DNA of 64,000 nucleotides, from the NCBI GenBank assembly GCA_038496445.1, contig JALMLS010000268.1, positions 124,001 through 188,000 of the forward strand. The letters run 5' to 3'. Within the stretch, counting starts at the first letter, position 1, and the number at the start of each line of letters is the position of its first letter. Below are positions 49,673-53,290 of the stretch, piece by piece. The notes under the pieces are model-generated. The model saw only the letters and a list, made by a program, of their open reading frames with translations, did no database searches and was not told the origin of the DNA. The translations under genes and the position numbers were made by a program. The stretch comes from Trichosphaerium sp. ATCC 40318 (taxonomy: Eukaryota; Protista; Tubulinea).

Positions 49673-50976
49673 ATGCAGCTTTCAATAACTTTGATCTGGT
49701 TTTAAGCGGTAACATTTGTTGAAGCCTCAAATGTACCAGGACAAACCAATAACCATTTAGGAGTACCTCAAAATGCTGCACAATGGATAGACTTGGCAAC
49801 TGAAGCAGGTATGACCACCACACGTGGTTTCACATAACGCCCATTTTTTTAACTATTGTTGAATGACTTTTTCGATTGTAACACTTCTACCTAAAGTACA
49901 GCTCGGTCACGGTATTCGAAATCAAGCTGGTGGAGTTTCTCAGAACAATAGGAGAGGTCAAACAAACCAAGCAAACGCTGCTAGTGAACCTAACCCGTTT
50001 GCTAATGCTATTGCAGGTATTTTCATGCAATGTTGTAAGTTCTCTTTTAATTGTTTTATCATTTGCGTCACGTGTACTAAAGAAAATAGTTTGTTAGGCC
50101 AAGCACTTGACTGAGGCTGGAAAGAATCCGGAGCAGTTACCAGAAAGTCGCAAGAAGAGGCTTCTTGTTGCTCTCAAAAACGAGCCATTACAAAGATGGA
50201 ACTTGATTAAATGGGCTCAATCTCCAGCTCAGGTATTTAATACTTGTGGTAGTATTAATAACCTATTTACATACTGACGCATGTTTATTTTCCAAGGCCG
50301 TAGCGTTAGCTCAACGTTTGCAAAAACCTATTTTGGTTGAGATTGTTGTTGGAAGATTAGCTGATCAAAACAGCAATGTTTGCTGACTGGGTGGGAGACT
50401 GGTGCGTTATCAATTACACTATTTCAAAAATATTGATTGTTTTAGATGCGTTCGACTGTGCTTTCGAATCAGTCATAAATTACATCAATGCGTATTTTGT
50501 ACCTGTTGCTGTGAATGTAACTCGTCAAGGTTTTCCTTCGGAGATTCCTGCTATGAAAATGCTTGAAATGGTTTAAGAGAGGAACTGGAGGTTTGCTTTT
50601 GAGTTTGCTAGTTGTGGTGCTTTTGATGACCAAGCGAAGGTATCTTTAGGCCATTCATCACCTGTAAAGGATGAGATGCAAAATGGGTTTTTTGGTGTGA
50701 CTTCTTTTTTAAATTTTCTGCAAAAAAGGTCTCAAGAATTTCCATCAAACACAACAAATTAGACAACGCTTCAGGCATGTGACATAAAAAATTTATTCTT
50801 TTTGTTTTGTTCAAGTTTAACTGTAGACCAGAAACGGCGATATTAGAGGCGGTATGGCTGCATCGCAGCAGTTGACTCGTCAGAGAATGATCGAGACCAG
50901 ACTAAAAGTTAATGAGTTAATGACGTTTCAACGTCAACTCCAAGCCAGCGGTTATGGCAATCTTGCCTCTGTTTAA
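49673..50976 (+). pseudogene. Disabled selenoprotein gene (SelN-like thioredoxin-fold domain, Cys-Sec motif)
   Basis: Spliced reading AVALAQRLQKPILVEIVVGRLADQNSNVC-TGA(50384-50386)-LGGRLMRSTVLS...VINYINAYFVPVAVNV resembles the SELENON redox region ([20 protein letters not shown]...LLNESF). Premature TAA at 49703 (in signal peptide) and 50574; frameshifts near 50110 and 50470; SECIS downstream. Confidence 0.75.
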
Positions 50977-51003
50977 AGATATATTTGTTAACTGAGTTTC
51001 TTT

Positions 51004-51085
51004 ATTGTTTTTTGTAATGAGGAGTGTATCACAAACATACAACCTGAACGAATGAAACACTTTGATGAAATGAAAGAAAAACAAT
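51004..51085 (+). promoter_or_regulatory. Eukaryotic SECIS element
   Basis: ATGA at 51017, 12 nt, apical AAA at 51033, 3' UGAU at 51063-51066; helix II GAGTGT-A-TCA / TGA-A-ACACTT; helix I ATTGTTTTT / AAAAACAAT; starts about 30 nt after the stop of the Cys-UGA gene. Confidence 0.8.
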
Positions 51086-51560
51086 TAATAAAACAACTCT
51101 GTTGCATTTAAACCTTTGTACCCATAATGCATGAATACTTGTTGGTATAGCATATGTTACCATCGTCAGATTACACTTCTATTGTTAAAAGTAAACGTCT
51201 TGGCGTTGTCATTGACCATGTATAACTCCTCAAAAGAACGTTGGGAACAATCCACCATTATCACTTGTTACGATAAGTTGTGTGGTGAGGATTTTAATTG
51301 TTATTAAATGGTTCTGTGAATCGCACCAATTCAAAGTCTAAACGTCTCAATAACATTTGTCAAACGTATACCTATAGCAGCATTAAGCTAATAACATTAA
51401 AATGGTACAGCTTGAACCTCAAAGAATGCTTAGAAACCTAAAACGCTATAAAGCGCTTTTCATTACTATTACAACCCATTAGTCTGGTTGTATTGCCGAT
51501 TTTAGCGTTTCTATCTATATATACTAACTATATCGACAGAGTGCAGTGAAAGCGTCATCA

Positions 51561-52703
51561 ATGATACCCAACTGGACTTGCAAGGTACCAGGAATGTACG
51601 AACAGACAGAATGTAAGATTTCAGTCACAAAGGCAGGCCTTGTACGTTCCAGCTATTTAAACCATTCTGCAGACGCATATTCTTTATATCTAAAGTCTCT
51701 ATGCGCTAAAATAAGGAAAACAGTCTGTGGGGTGCCATTTTGTGTAAAACACTTTAAAACTGACCGTGGCGCATTTTACGTATTTCTGAGGCGAAATTGT
51801 CCACCTGAAAGCAATATCACACTTTTCTATTACCTTTTTTTTTTTTTTTTTTTTTTTCAGGCGTATGTTGGTGTAGGGGATACTATATTAGTGTTCGACT
51901 TGACTCAACCGTCAAAGGACCCAAGGACTCTTCTAAAAATACGAGACATTAGTTCAATATCCATCACGTGTGATGAAAAGTTTATGATTGTTAGAAGCGA
52001 AACACGGTCTGCAGTAGTTGACTTGAAAACAGGAAGCATACTCAGAGATTTTTCTATTAAGTTCAAAGACAAGGTTATCTCGAATGGGAGTATAGTTTTA
52101 ATGTGTTGTGATAGCAAAGATCCGAGTGTTTACTATGCTATTGTAAAGAAAGAAGGTAAAATAGAGCAAGGGATATACAAGTGTTGGATTGACAAGCCAA
52201 CATGCGTATATTGGTCTTCTTTGACAGATGATTTTGCAGACCAGGGATACGGACAAGTTGCTAAACACTTGTTTTTTAATAACGTACCTTCTGTTATACA
52301 TCAATGCATGCCAGGTATATATGGAACGTATTTTCCAGTATTCTTTTTGTCGAACGAAAACGGAACTAAAAACTTGGAATATCAAACATACAATGCCGGA
52401 GAAGAAGGATTTATGTGTTTGTATCATGATAAGAATGATCAAGATTTATCTGTTGCATCTAAGGTTCTTGTAACACATACATATCCTTGTTTTATAACAA
52501 TGCATGATTTGTTCAGTGACAACATTAGAGCATTCAATCTTTATGATTTGGAATATGTATCTGGCATAACAATGTTCAATGGCAGTGTTTTTTGCTTTAT
52601 GACACTTGATGATGGTATAACATTATTTAAGATTGATGATATTAATAGCCTTGAAATGGAAGTACCTCAGCAATACTATCGTACTGACAAGACTCACTCT
52701 TGA
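51561..52703 (+). CDS. Hypothetical beta-rich (beta-propeller-like) protein
   Basis: Two exons (gtacgt donor at about 51642, poly-T/cag acceptor at 51860); blade-like segments YVGVGDTILVFDL, ISSISITCDEKFMIV, SAVVDLKTG, VSGITMFNGSVF. Confidence 0.55.
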   Translation: MIPNWTCKVPGMYEQTECKISVTKAGLVRSSYLNHSADAYSLYLKSLCAKIRKTVCGVPFCVKHFKTDRGAFYVFLRRNCPPESNITLFYYLFFFFFFFQAYVGVGDTILVFDLTQPSKDPRTLLKIRDISSISITCDEKFMIVRSETRSAVVDLKTGSILRDFSIKFKDKVISNGSIVLMCCDSKDPSVYYAIVKKEGKIEQGIYKCWIDKPTCVYWSSLTDDFADQGYGQVAKHLFFNNVPSVIHQCMPGIYGTYFPVFFLSNENGTKNLEYQTYNAGEEGFMCLYHDKNDQDLSVASKVLVTHTYPCFITMHDLFSDNIRAFNLYDLEYVSGITMFNGSVFCFMTLDDGITLFKIDDINSLEMEVPQQYYRTDKTHS

Positions 52704-52839
52704 GGGCATAATTGTTCTATCATGTACATTTATAAAATTCATAAATACAAATTATTTTTTATTTAGTTAAGTCACATCTGTTTGGCTTTCTTTTTCCACT
52801 GGTGTTATGACGTTTGTTATTATGATATTCCTTGTACAG

Positions 52840-53290
52840 TTAATATGTTGGTTCACCATTGACATAGTGTACACAGTGTTTAAGTTGTCCGTGATATGTC
52901 CATATCTTGTAATCTCCTTCCAACTTATCGTTTTTATGCCACAACTTTACATCTCCACTGATTTTACCCTTAGAATAATTACGTATCACTTGTATTTGTC
53001 CATCTTCATCCCATCTCTTATACTCACCAGAAAGTTTACCATCAATATAATTACAGTGACACATAAGTATTCCAGTTTCATACCACCGCTTGTTTTCTCC
53101 TTCTAGCTTGTGATTGGCGTTATACGAAGACTGCTCTTTCACCTGACCATTTTCATACCAGTGCTTATAATCTCCTTGTTGAGTATCATTAACATAAGCA
53201 CAATGTTTCCATAGCACTCCGTTACTATACCACATCTTGTAATCTCCTTCTAGTTTATCATTAGAATAATGACATTGCTTCGCTAATGTG
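52840..53290 (-). CDS. MORN-variant (MORN_2/YwqK-like) repeat protein or fragment, intronless
   Basis: Repeats such as GDYKHWYENGQVKEQSSY and GENKRWYETGILMCHCNYIDGKLSGEYKRW; repeat frame continues upstream of the first ATG (53235), suggesting 5' truncation. Confidence 0.65.

Follow-up and report, generated by a model that had tools for sequence, protein, structure and literature searches.

A probable decaying duplicate of a selenoprotein gene in Trichosphaerium and its intact parent, a candidate Cys-Sec protein of thioredoxin-like fold

This study concerns a selenoprotein-like locus at positions 49673–51085 of a 64,000-nucleotide (nt) stretch of the Trichosphaerium sp. ATCC 40318 genome (contig JALMLS010000268.1, positions 124,001–188,000; hereafter the window). 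Comparison with the rest of the assembly indicates, with a probability of about 0.85, that this locus (locus A) is a decaying, 5′-truncated, DNA-level duplicate of a working selenoprotein gene (gene B), which lies 79 kb away on the same contig. An earlier note, made from the letters of the window alone, had described locus A as a short, secreted or endoplasmic reticulum (ER) protein gene of selenoprotein N (SelN) type, lost recently. On the reading proposed here, locus A is an ordinary duplicate pseudogene, uninformative on whether selenium use has been lost; what makes it valuable is that it points to gene B, which would add a conserved, unannotated thioredoxin-fold family with a cysteine-selenocysteine (Cys-Sec) pair to the selenoproteome of this protist.

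Locus A and the duplicated block

The window is eukaryotic DNA, with ~36% GC, short GT–AG introns, and F-box/LRR, MORN and DOCK genes. In a search of the whole assembly (70 Mb), each of two exon pieces matched exactly two places: locus A (window 49689–51181) and its paralogue B (G000:C27, ~254780–253064, minus strand), where the matches fall at ~253.4–253.7 kb. Here and below, searches and folds made use of separate B exon pieces, natural database proteins and natural Cys-form homologues. A base-by-base alignment of A with B gives 94% identity across 1503 nt of exon and intron sequence, and the likeness runs on to window position 53289, such that a block of 3.6 kb has been copied in inverted orientation. 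The block comprises the 3′ two thirds of the selenoprotein gene together with downstream open reading frames (ORFs).

The 5′ boundary of the duplication explains the start of locus A. The B bases that match window 49689–49724 fall in a 46-nt intron which is spliced out in RNA-derived contigs of four public runs, X1–X4 (joint 4430>4477). Since the homology between A and B begins within this intron, the third of B, window 49673–49724 consists of 16 nt of flank and 36 nt of intron, and not of the signal peptide read there in the earlier note. Nor do the exon translations of B, which starts MRGRPPPVPN..., contain a signal peptide or a hydrophobic stretch, and the secreted or ER location proposed for the product is not borne out. 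With the break inside intron 3, locus A has no promoter, no start codon and no exons 1–3.

The in-frame Cys-TGA is present in A as TGC-TGA at 50381–50386, and both TAA codons described previously are also there, one at 49703–49705 (in frame with the ATG at 49673) and one at 50574–50576. The damage exceeds the two or more frameshifts that had been recognised from A alone: comparison with B reveals three (−2, −4 and +1), with a change of frame in A at ~50464–50472. The exon 8 copy has lost 4 nt after 50464 (one CGAA repeat unit), carries TAT>TAA at 50574–50576, and has gained a G at 50728. Residues conserved in the family are substituted in A (F210L, G286E and G297A, the last two in exon 8). B is open at every place where A is broken, and it is this comparison of lesions with an intact parent that supports the pseudogene status which the earlier note had assigned to A. 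The features of the locus are collected in Table 1.

Readings in which the TAA codons and frame changes of A would be tolerated were considered and rejected. A variant genetic code, programmed frameshifting and nuclear RNA editing were each dismissed because B has ordinary sense codons at the corresponding places, and because the B transcript contigs have no inserted or deleted letters. An alternative splice from a GTGGGA donor at 50391 to an acceptor at 50472, which would mask the 4-nt deletion, was rejected because it removes the conserved segment G-G-R-L-M-R-S-T-V-L, and because its junction is not that of B.

Table 1. Features of locus A and of the duplicated block (window coordinates; joints and gaps of B in L005 numbering).
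Feature	Position	Strand	Basis
Duplicated block, inverted copy of G000:C27:254466–250753	49689–53289		94–97% identity; blastn against C27:240001–270000, three collinear pieces
Non-coding start region (49673–49688 unrelated flank; 49689–49724 derived from the 3′ end of intron 3 of the parent)	49673–49724	+	Alignment with B
Exon 4 copy, 84 nt, one missense change (D>N)	49725–49808	+	Alignment with B
Destroyed intron-4 acceptor, AG>AA (TTGTAAC in A, TTGTAGC in B)	49880–49881	+	B acceptor fixed by joint 4280>4347
Exon 5 copy; 2-nt deletion after 50030, a frameshift	49882–50034	+	Gap at L005 4131–4130
Exon 6 copy, 135 nt, open	50098–50232	+	Alignment, translation
Exon 7 copy; Cys 50381–50383, Sec codon TGA 50384–50386, then L-G-G-R-L	50297–50401	+	Same codons in B and in B mRNA contigs
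Exon 8 copy; three lesions and missense changes	50446–50774	+	Alignment with B; family alignment A1
Last intron copy, GC..AG type	50775–50831	+	GC at 50775 homologous to the spliced GC intron of B
Exon 9 copy (C-terminal tail); natural stop TAA 50974–50976, not TAG 50760	50832–50976	+	Alignment with B
SECIS-type (selenocysteine insertion sequence) hairpin copy; ATGA 51017–51020, AAA 51033–51035, GA 51064–51065	51003–51085	+	Fold and pattern scan

The duplicated block also holds a neighbouring ORF (window 51528–52700, plus strand), which is open in the A copy (391 residues, no Pfam family). In the B copy (G000:C27, ~252550–251370) the same ORF is split into frames of 299 and 168 residues by several small insertions or deletions. 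Each copy of the block may have kept a different gene, the selenoprotein gene in B and the adjoining ORF in A.

Gene B, its transcripts and its in-frame UGA

Read exon by exon, gene B has nine exons and a continuous frame of 1173 nt (390 codons) ending in a TAA stop, with Cys226 directly followed by the TGA codon assigned to Sec227. The start codon is the ATG at L005 4780; a stop lies in frame 37 codons before it, with no other in-frame ATG between the two. The predicted protein has a low-complexity N-terminus and a helical C-terminal tail. With 390 residues, it is not the short stand-alone protein envisaged from locus A.

Contigs from the four runs (X1–X4, from three studies), aligned on L005:2700–5700, skip the eight introns of B. 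The sequencing type of the runs is not on record, and it is the splicing that shows the RNA origin of the contigs. At least three runs support six of the eight splice junctions; another is confined to X1 and X3, with X4 placing it one base off and carrying an extra letter. Seven introns are of the GT–AG type and the last is GC–AG: this intron (L005:3335–3386, minus strand; ends CT..GC; joint 3334>3387) is spliced in all four runs, and its GC is kept in A. The contigs cover L005 4855–3064 with no inserted or deleted letters and with the TGA unchanged, and a single contig of 1349 nt in run X1 extends from L005 4830 to 3064, including the hairpin in the 3′ untranslated region (3′UTR). The joined product of exons 8 and 9 is also the predicted ORF of an MMETSP transcript (P0001).

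Upstream of B, on the same strand (L005:5027–5538 and beyond; G000:C27 ~255.0–256.6 kb, minus), lies a gene that looks like a histone-fold subunit of the NF-YC type. Its contigs stop ~170 nt before those of B begin, which suggests a short intergenic promoter region between the two genes.

Relatives of B were sought by phmmer against 1.84 billion representative sequences, with exon 8 (110 residues, a query that does not include the Sec-flanking motif). Nearly all of the 64 relatives recovered begin at a Met six codons past the TGA; gene models that start just after a TGA typically arise where a gene caller has taken a Sec codon for a stop. The nucleotide sequences behind such models bear this out. 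Soil metatranscriptome contigs (L016 and L018/L019) keep one frame through ...VGRMADxxSxVC-TGA-L(G/V)GR(L/V)MRS..., a genomic contig (L020) reads through C-TGA-L-x-G-R and has an intron at the same position, after LGGRL, and a further contig (L022) begins at TGA-LGGRLMR. In all of these (L016, L018/L019, L020 and L022), the coding sequence is conserved before and after an in-frame UGA. A GC-rich eukaryote (L021) has a Cys-Cys form, C-C-L-G-G-R, and one family member comes from the nucleariid Parvularia. Among bacteria, two metagenome contigs (L027 and L029) encode a signal peptide and then C-TGA-LGGR, while three full-length proteins (P0053, P0054 and P0063) align a Cys, ungapped, with the Sec column (alignment A1). 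The Cys-form look-alike clusters of bacteria are mostly from Verrucomicrobiota and Planctomycetota. The Sec or Cys orthologues anticipated by the earlier note are at hand: the protists have Cys-UGA, with one Cys-Cys form, and the bacteria have either Sec or Cys.

UGA codon 227 of B is most likely read as selenocysteine, as judged from this pattern of conservation. By the same comparisons, B belongs to an unnamed family of predicted thioredoxin fold, with Sec and Cys forms in both bacteria and eukaryotes.

Two groups of family members deserve separate mention. In one metatranscriptome fragment (P0051, 330 residues), the post-Sec half of the thioredoxin-like domain is followed by a repeat rich in Pro and Gln and, at the C-terminus, by a WW domain (Pfam, E 2e-13), which suggests that some eukaryotic members are adaptor-linked. 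In the bacterial contigs L027 and L029, gene callers break the ORF at C-TGA-LGGR, and none of the NCBIfam selenoprotein models matches; these sequences seem to belong to a bacterial family of selenoproteins that awaits curation.

The 3′UTR hairpin was assessed with a simple SECIS pattern, namely [A/G]TGA, 9–13 nt, AA and GA, flanked by two helices. The pattern occurs once per 3′UTR in B, A, L016 and L018, with a spacing of 12–13 nt; the 3′UTR of L022 fits by eye and by fold once a bulge is allowed, with a GUGA core, and the 3′UTR of the Cys form L021 has no match. Algae and sponges also provide examples of GUGA cores like those of L016 and L022 (PMC3473315). The background of so simple a pattern is 16 matches per 128 kb of the window (approximately 1 per 8 kb) and 2–10 per shuffled 64 kb. 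In A, the hairpin forms two helices (~51003–51085), with ATGA, then AA 12 nt later, and then GA. It folds at −11.9 kcal/mol (z −0.92), no better than shuffled sequence, and has lost the apical mini-stem present in B, for which the corresponding values are −15.6 kcal/mol and z −2.33. The sole Rfam match on the hairpin (window 51012–51084), a weak one, is to the Caenorhabditis C/D-box snoRNA ceN89 (21.9 bits, E 0.22), and probably reflects a K-turn-like UGA/GA core common to both.

That the lineage has the Sec machinery is supported by three genes. Infernal finds a tRNA-Sec at 61.7 bits (cut-off 47), with anticodon UCA and loop CUUCAAA, although ARAGORN makes no call for it; SepSecS is present as a multi-exon gene; and a GPx gene (G000:C7:494600–495665; L026) has an in-frame TGA (NVAS-x-TGA-G) and a SECIS recognised by Rfam (RF00031, 38.5 bits). 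The B hairpin has the same layout as the GPx SECIS, AUGA-12 nt-AAA-mini-stem. The earlier note had concluded from locus A that the lineage has or had such machinery, and had suggested a search for an intact paralogue; both genes of the machinery and the paralogue are found. Taken with the relatives, gene B bears out the reading of the locus as sequence of a selenoprotein gene, with its Cys-Sec dyad and a hairpin of SECIS type in the 3′UTR.

Weighing of the alternatives

We propose an inverted duplication of 3.6 kb, one end of which fell within intron 3; the resulting copy A would have been without promoter, start codon and exons 1–3 from the outset. The inactivated splice acceptor of A, its three frameshifts, its nonsense codon and its substitutions at conserved residues would all have arisen later. 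B, by this account, is transcribed and its nine exons are spliced, its product being most likely a protein of 390 residues with Sec encoded by UGA codon 227, the recoding presumably helped by a type-2 SECIS hairpin starting ~40 nt past the stop codon. In the predicted thioredoxin-like domain of the product, Sec would replace the first Cys of a CxxC motif and Gly the second, with the additional Cys directly before Sec. By analogy with what has been proposed for GCUG of thioredoxin reductase and SCUG of SelN, the Cys-Sec pair may cycle between a selenolate-thiol and a selenenylsulfide.

Several observations weigh against a silent pseudogene A with a selenoprotein parent. The lesions of A are read from the assembly sequence, and the additional G at 50728 sits after a run of A, an error-prone context; A might then be an intact second gene whose lesions are assembly errors. 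We regard this as very unlikely, given that the five lesions are independent and differ in kind (a substitution in a splice site, a deletion of 2 nt, a deletion of one 4-nt CGAA unit, a two-base substitution creating TAA, and a 1-nt insertion), that the first three exons and the start codon are missing, and that family-conserved residues are substituted. The divergence of the two copies is a further difficulty: exons differ by 3.4% and the 3′UTR hairpin by 2.4% compared with 6.9% in introns, and coding substitutions divide into 16 synonymous and 16 non-synonymous, a pattern close to that expected if one lineage was constrained and the other free, yet compatible with some early constraint on A, or with gene conversion. 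Furthermore, the four runs appear to stem from strains different from the assembled one, their contigs differing from it at five to seven letters, several of which match A; at five L005 positions (4229, 4029, 4028, 3222 and 3200) these B alleles carry the letter of A, which could reflect ancestral polymorphism among strains or conversion between A and B. Such features would suit an A that is transcribed and retains some residual role, as a non-coding RNA, a decoy for a SECIS-binding factor or a gene-conversion donor. This we consider improbable, since A inherited no promoter, its hairpin is without the apical stem, and the four runs contain no A-type contig at 88% likeness; the last point is weak evidence of silence, as contigs drop rare variants and the runs appear to derive from other strains. 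A is presumably silent.

The view with which the locus was first approached, that the lineage's only SelN-type gene, encoding a short secreted protein, is now being lost, is natural within the window, where the locus looks like a single damaged gene that opens with an ATG (49673) and a hydrophobic segment. It has become highly improbable with an intact paralogue 79 kb away covered by spliced RNA-derived contigs, a ‘signal peptide’ that is intron and flank, and a genome which retains the Sec machinery; nor is B likely to be an assembly artefact, as independent transcript contigs match B and not A. Recent loss of the gene is thus not borne out. It might also be argued that the TGA of B is a true stop, with the downstream frame a separate product or untranslated, as public gene callers do break the ORF there. 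Conservation, however, crosses the TGA in protists and bacteria, Cys stands at the Sec column in L021, P0053, P0054 and P0063, a thioredoxin fold needs both halves, and SECIS-type hairpins go with the TGA forms and not with the Cys form; a true stop is almost certainly the wrong reading. A remaining objection to Sec insertion in B comes from Rfam: no SECIS was matched by cmscan (E up to 10) in B, in four orthologue contigs or in the window region, and RF00031, run over the whole genome, finds only one SECIS, that of the GPx gene. With one SECIS recovered genome-wide, the model appears to be insensitive here, in which case its result would not be evidence against the hairpin. The SECIS that had been called at 51004–51085 accordingly stands as a two-helix hairpin passing the simple pattern, and not as an element recognised by the Rfam SECIS models. 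On balance, a decaying duplicate A with a working selenoprotein parent B is the reading we prefer.

Fold, and comparison with known systems

The exon pieces of B gave no match in Pfam, in a PDB sequence search or in NCBIfam; the Pfam scan, at E-values up to 1–10, covered most of these pieces, namely those other than exon 2 and the five post-TGA codons. Assignment of a fold comes from the bacterial Cys form P0054, which passes the Pfam Thioredox_DsbH model (31.9 bits, cut-off 27). Because the exon pieces of B themselves give no match, membership of B in the Thioredox_DsbH group is transitive, through alignment A1. In the AlphaFold 2 (AF2) model of P0054, with a predicted local distance difference test score (pLDDT) of 80.8, C114 immediately precedes helix 115–122 and follows strand 96–101. 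Foldseek matches for this model include 3ira, 7tkv, 3f9u and 1sen (E ~2e-4 to 7e-4), and Foldseek together with an ESM Atlas shape search retrieved the DsbH/DUF255, Thioredoxin_7, ERp19 and AGR2/3 folds. When the family profile is set against 3ira, the Sec/Cys column falls on the first Cys of C-H-W-C and the Gly/Ala column on the second.

In SelN, Sec is located inside a thioredoxin-like domain (PMC7474598), within the motif SCUG; in the human protein, Sec462 is accompanied by Arg466 four residues on (PMC12839072). The likeness of B to SelN is plausible at the level of motifs, and is drawn from these published features of SelN rather than from a sequence comparison. In the phmmer search with exon 8, a query which lies outside the Sec-flanking motif, no SelN-sized animal protein was found at E<1e-3; a word search based on the family profile yielded three proteins, all bacterial, SelN was absent from the PDB searches, and our literature searches found no report of SelN-like proteins outside animals. 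The 20–30 residues after Sec presumably resemble SelN as well (G-R-x-x-R-x-T-V-L ... N-E-x-F), an unconfirmed resemblance which we take as a lead only. By analogy, B may be described as a thioredoxin-fold selenoprotein of an unnamed family with an active site that would work like that of SelN, but not as a demonstrated SelN member.

It is possible, though we offer this only tentatively, that B represents an ancient selenoprotein family (C-U-L-G-G-R, with a DsbH/Trx_7-like fold) common to exported bacterial proteins and to protists (among them an amoeba and a nucleariid), and a pre-metazoan sister or source of the SelN catalytic domain, SelN having arisen by the addition of a membrane anchor and EF-hand. 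SelN is a human disease gene, and we know of no solved structure for its catalytic domain. Should a profile comparison uphold the SelN likeness, the soluble relatives described here would be easier models for Cys-Sec chemistry, and would provide a handle on the origin of SelN.

With SelN (SELENON/SEPN1, of animals), B shares the Cys before Sec (SCUG in SelN; V-C-U-L in B), an Arg at U+4, a predicted thioredoxin-like domain around Sec and, putatively, Sec recoding by a 3′UTR SECIS. It differs in the residue that follows Sec (Gly in SelN, Leu in B), and in its 390-residue architecture with a low-complexity N-terminus and a helical C-terminal tail; B is also without the type II membrane anchor, EF-hand and signal sequence. 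For the EF-hand, there was no Pfam match, at the same E-values, in the B exon pieces covered by the scan or in the N-terminal halves of L016 and L018. The SelN-type label of the earlier note is not borne out: behind it stands a likeness at the level of motifs (C-U, Arg at U+4, a thioredoxin-like domain), and the membrane anchor and EF-hand of SelN are absent.

Thioredoxin_7 and Thioredox_DsbH (DUF255) proteins (3ira, 7tkv, ERp19/TXNDC12, AGR2/3 and the TRX domain of SPATA20) have the fold predicted for the B family, and they too have a redox residue where helix 1 begins, following strand 1. In contrast to these, the B family has no CxxC; its motif is U/C-x-G-G/A, with Gly or Ala at the fourth position, and the Sec forms have an extra Cys before Sec. 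The thioredoxin-like bacterial selenoproteins of NCBIfam (VPGUxxT type 2, Trx7/PDZ and TsoB) are likewise exported and occur in Sec and Cys forms, but matches to them fall far below the cut-offs (16.6/275, 10.9/300 and 11.1/805 bits, respectively), and the family motif, C-U-L-G-G-R, is unlike VPGUxxT. Locus A, finally, resembles duplicated (non-processed) pseudogenes in its retained introns, its cut at the duplication boundary, its frame-breaking lesions and its intact parent. Nothing about it would be unusual among them, except that the parent is a selenoprotein gene, so that the copy keeps a fossil UGA and a SECIS-type hairpin.

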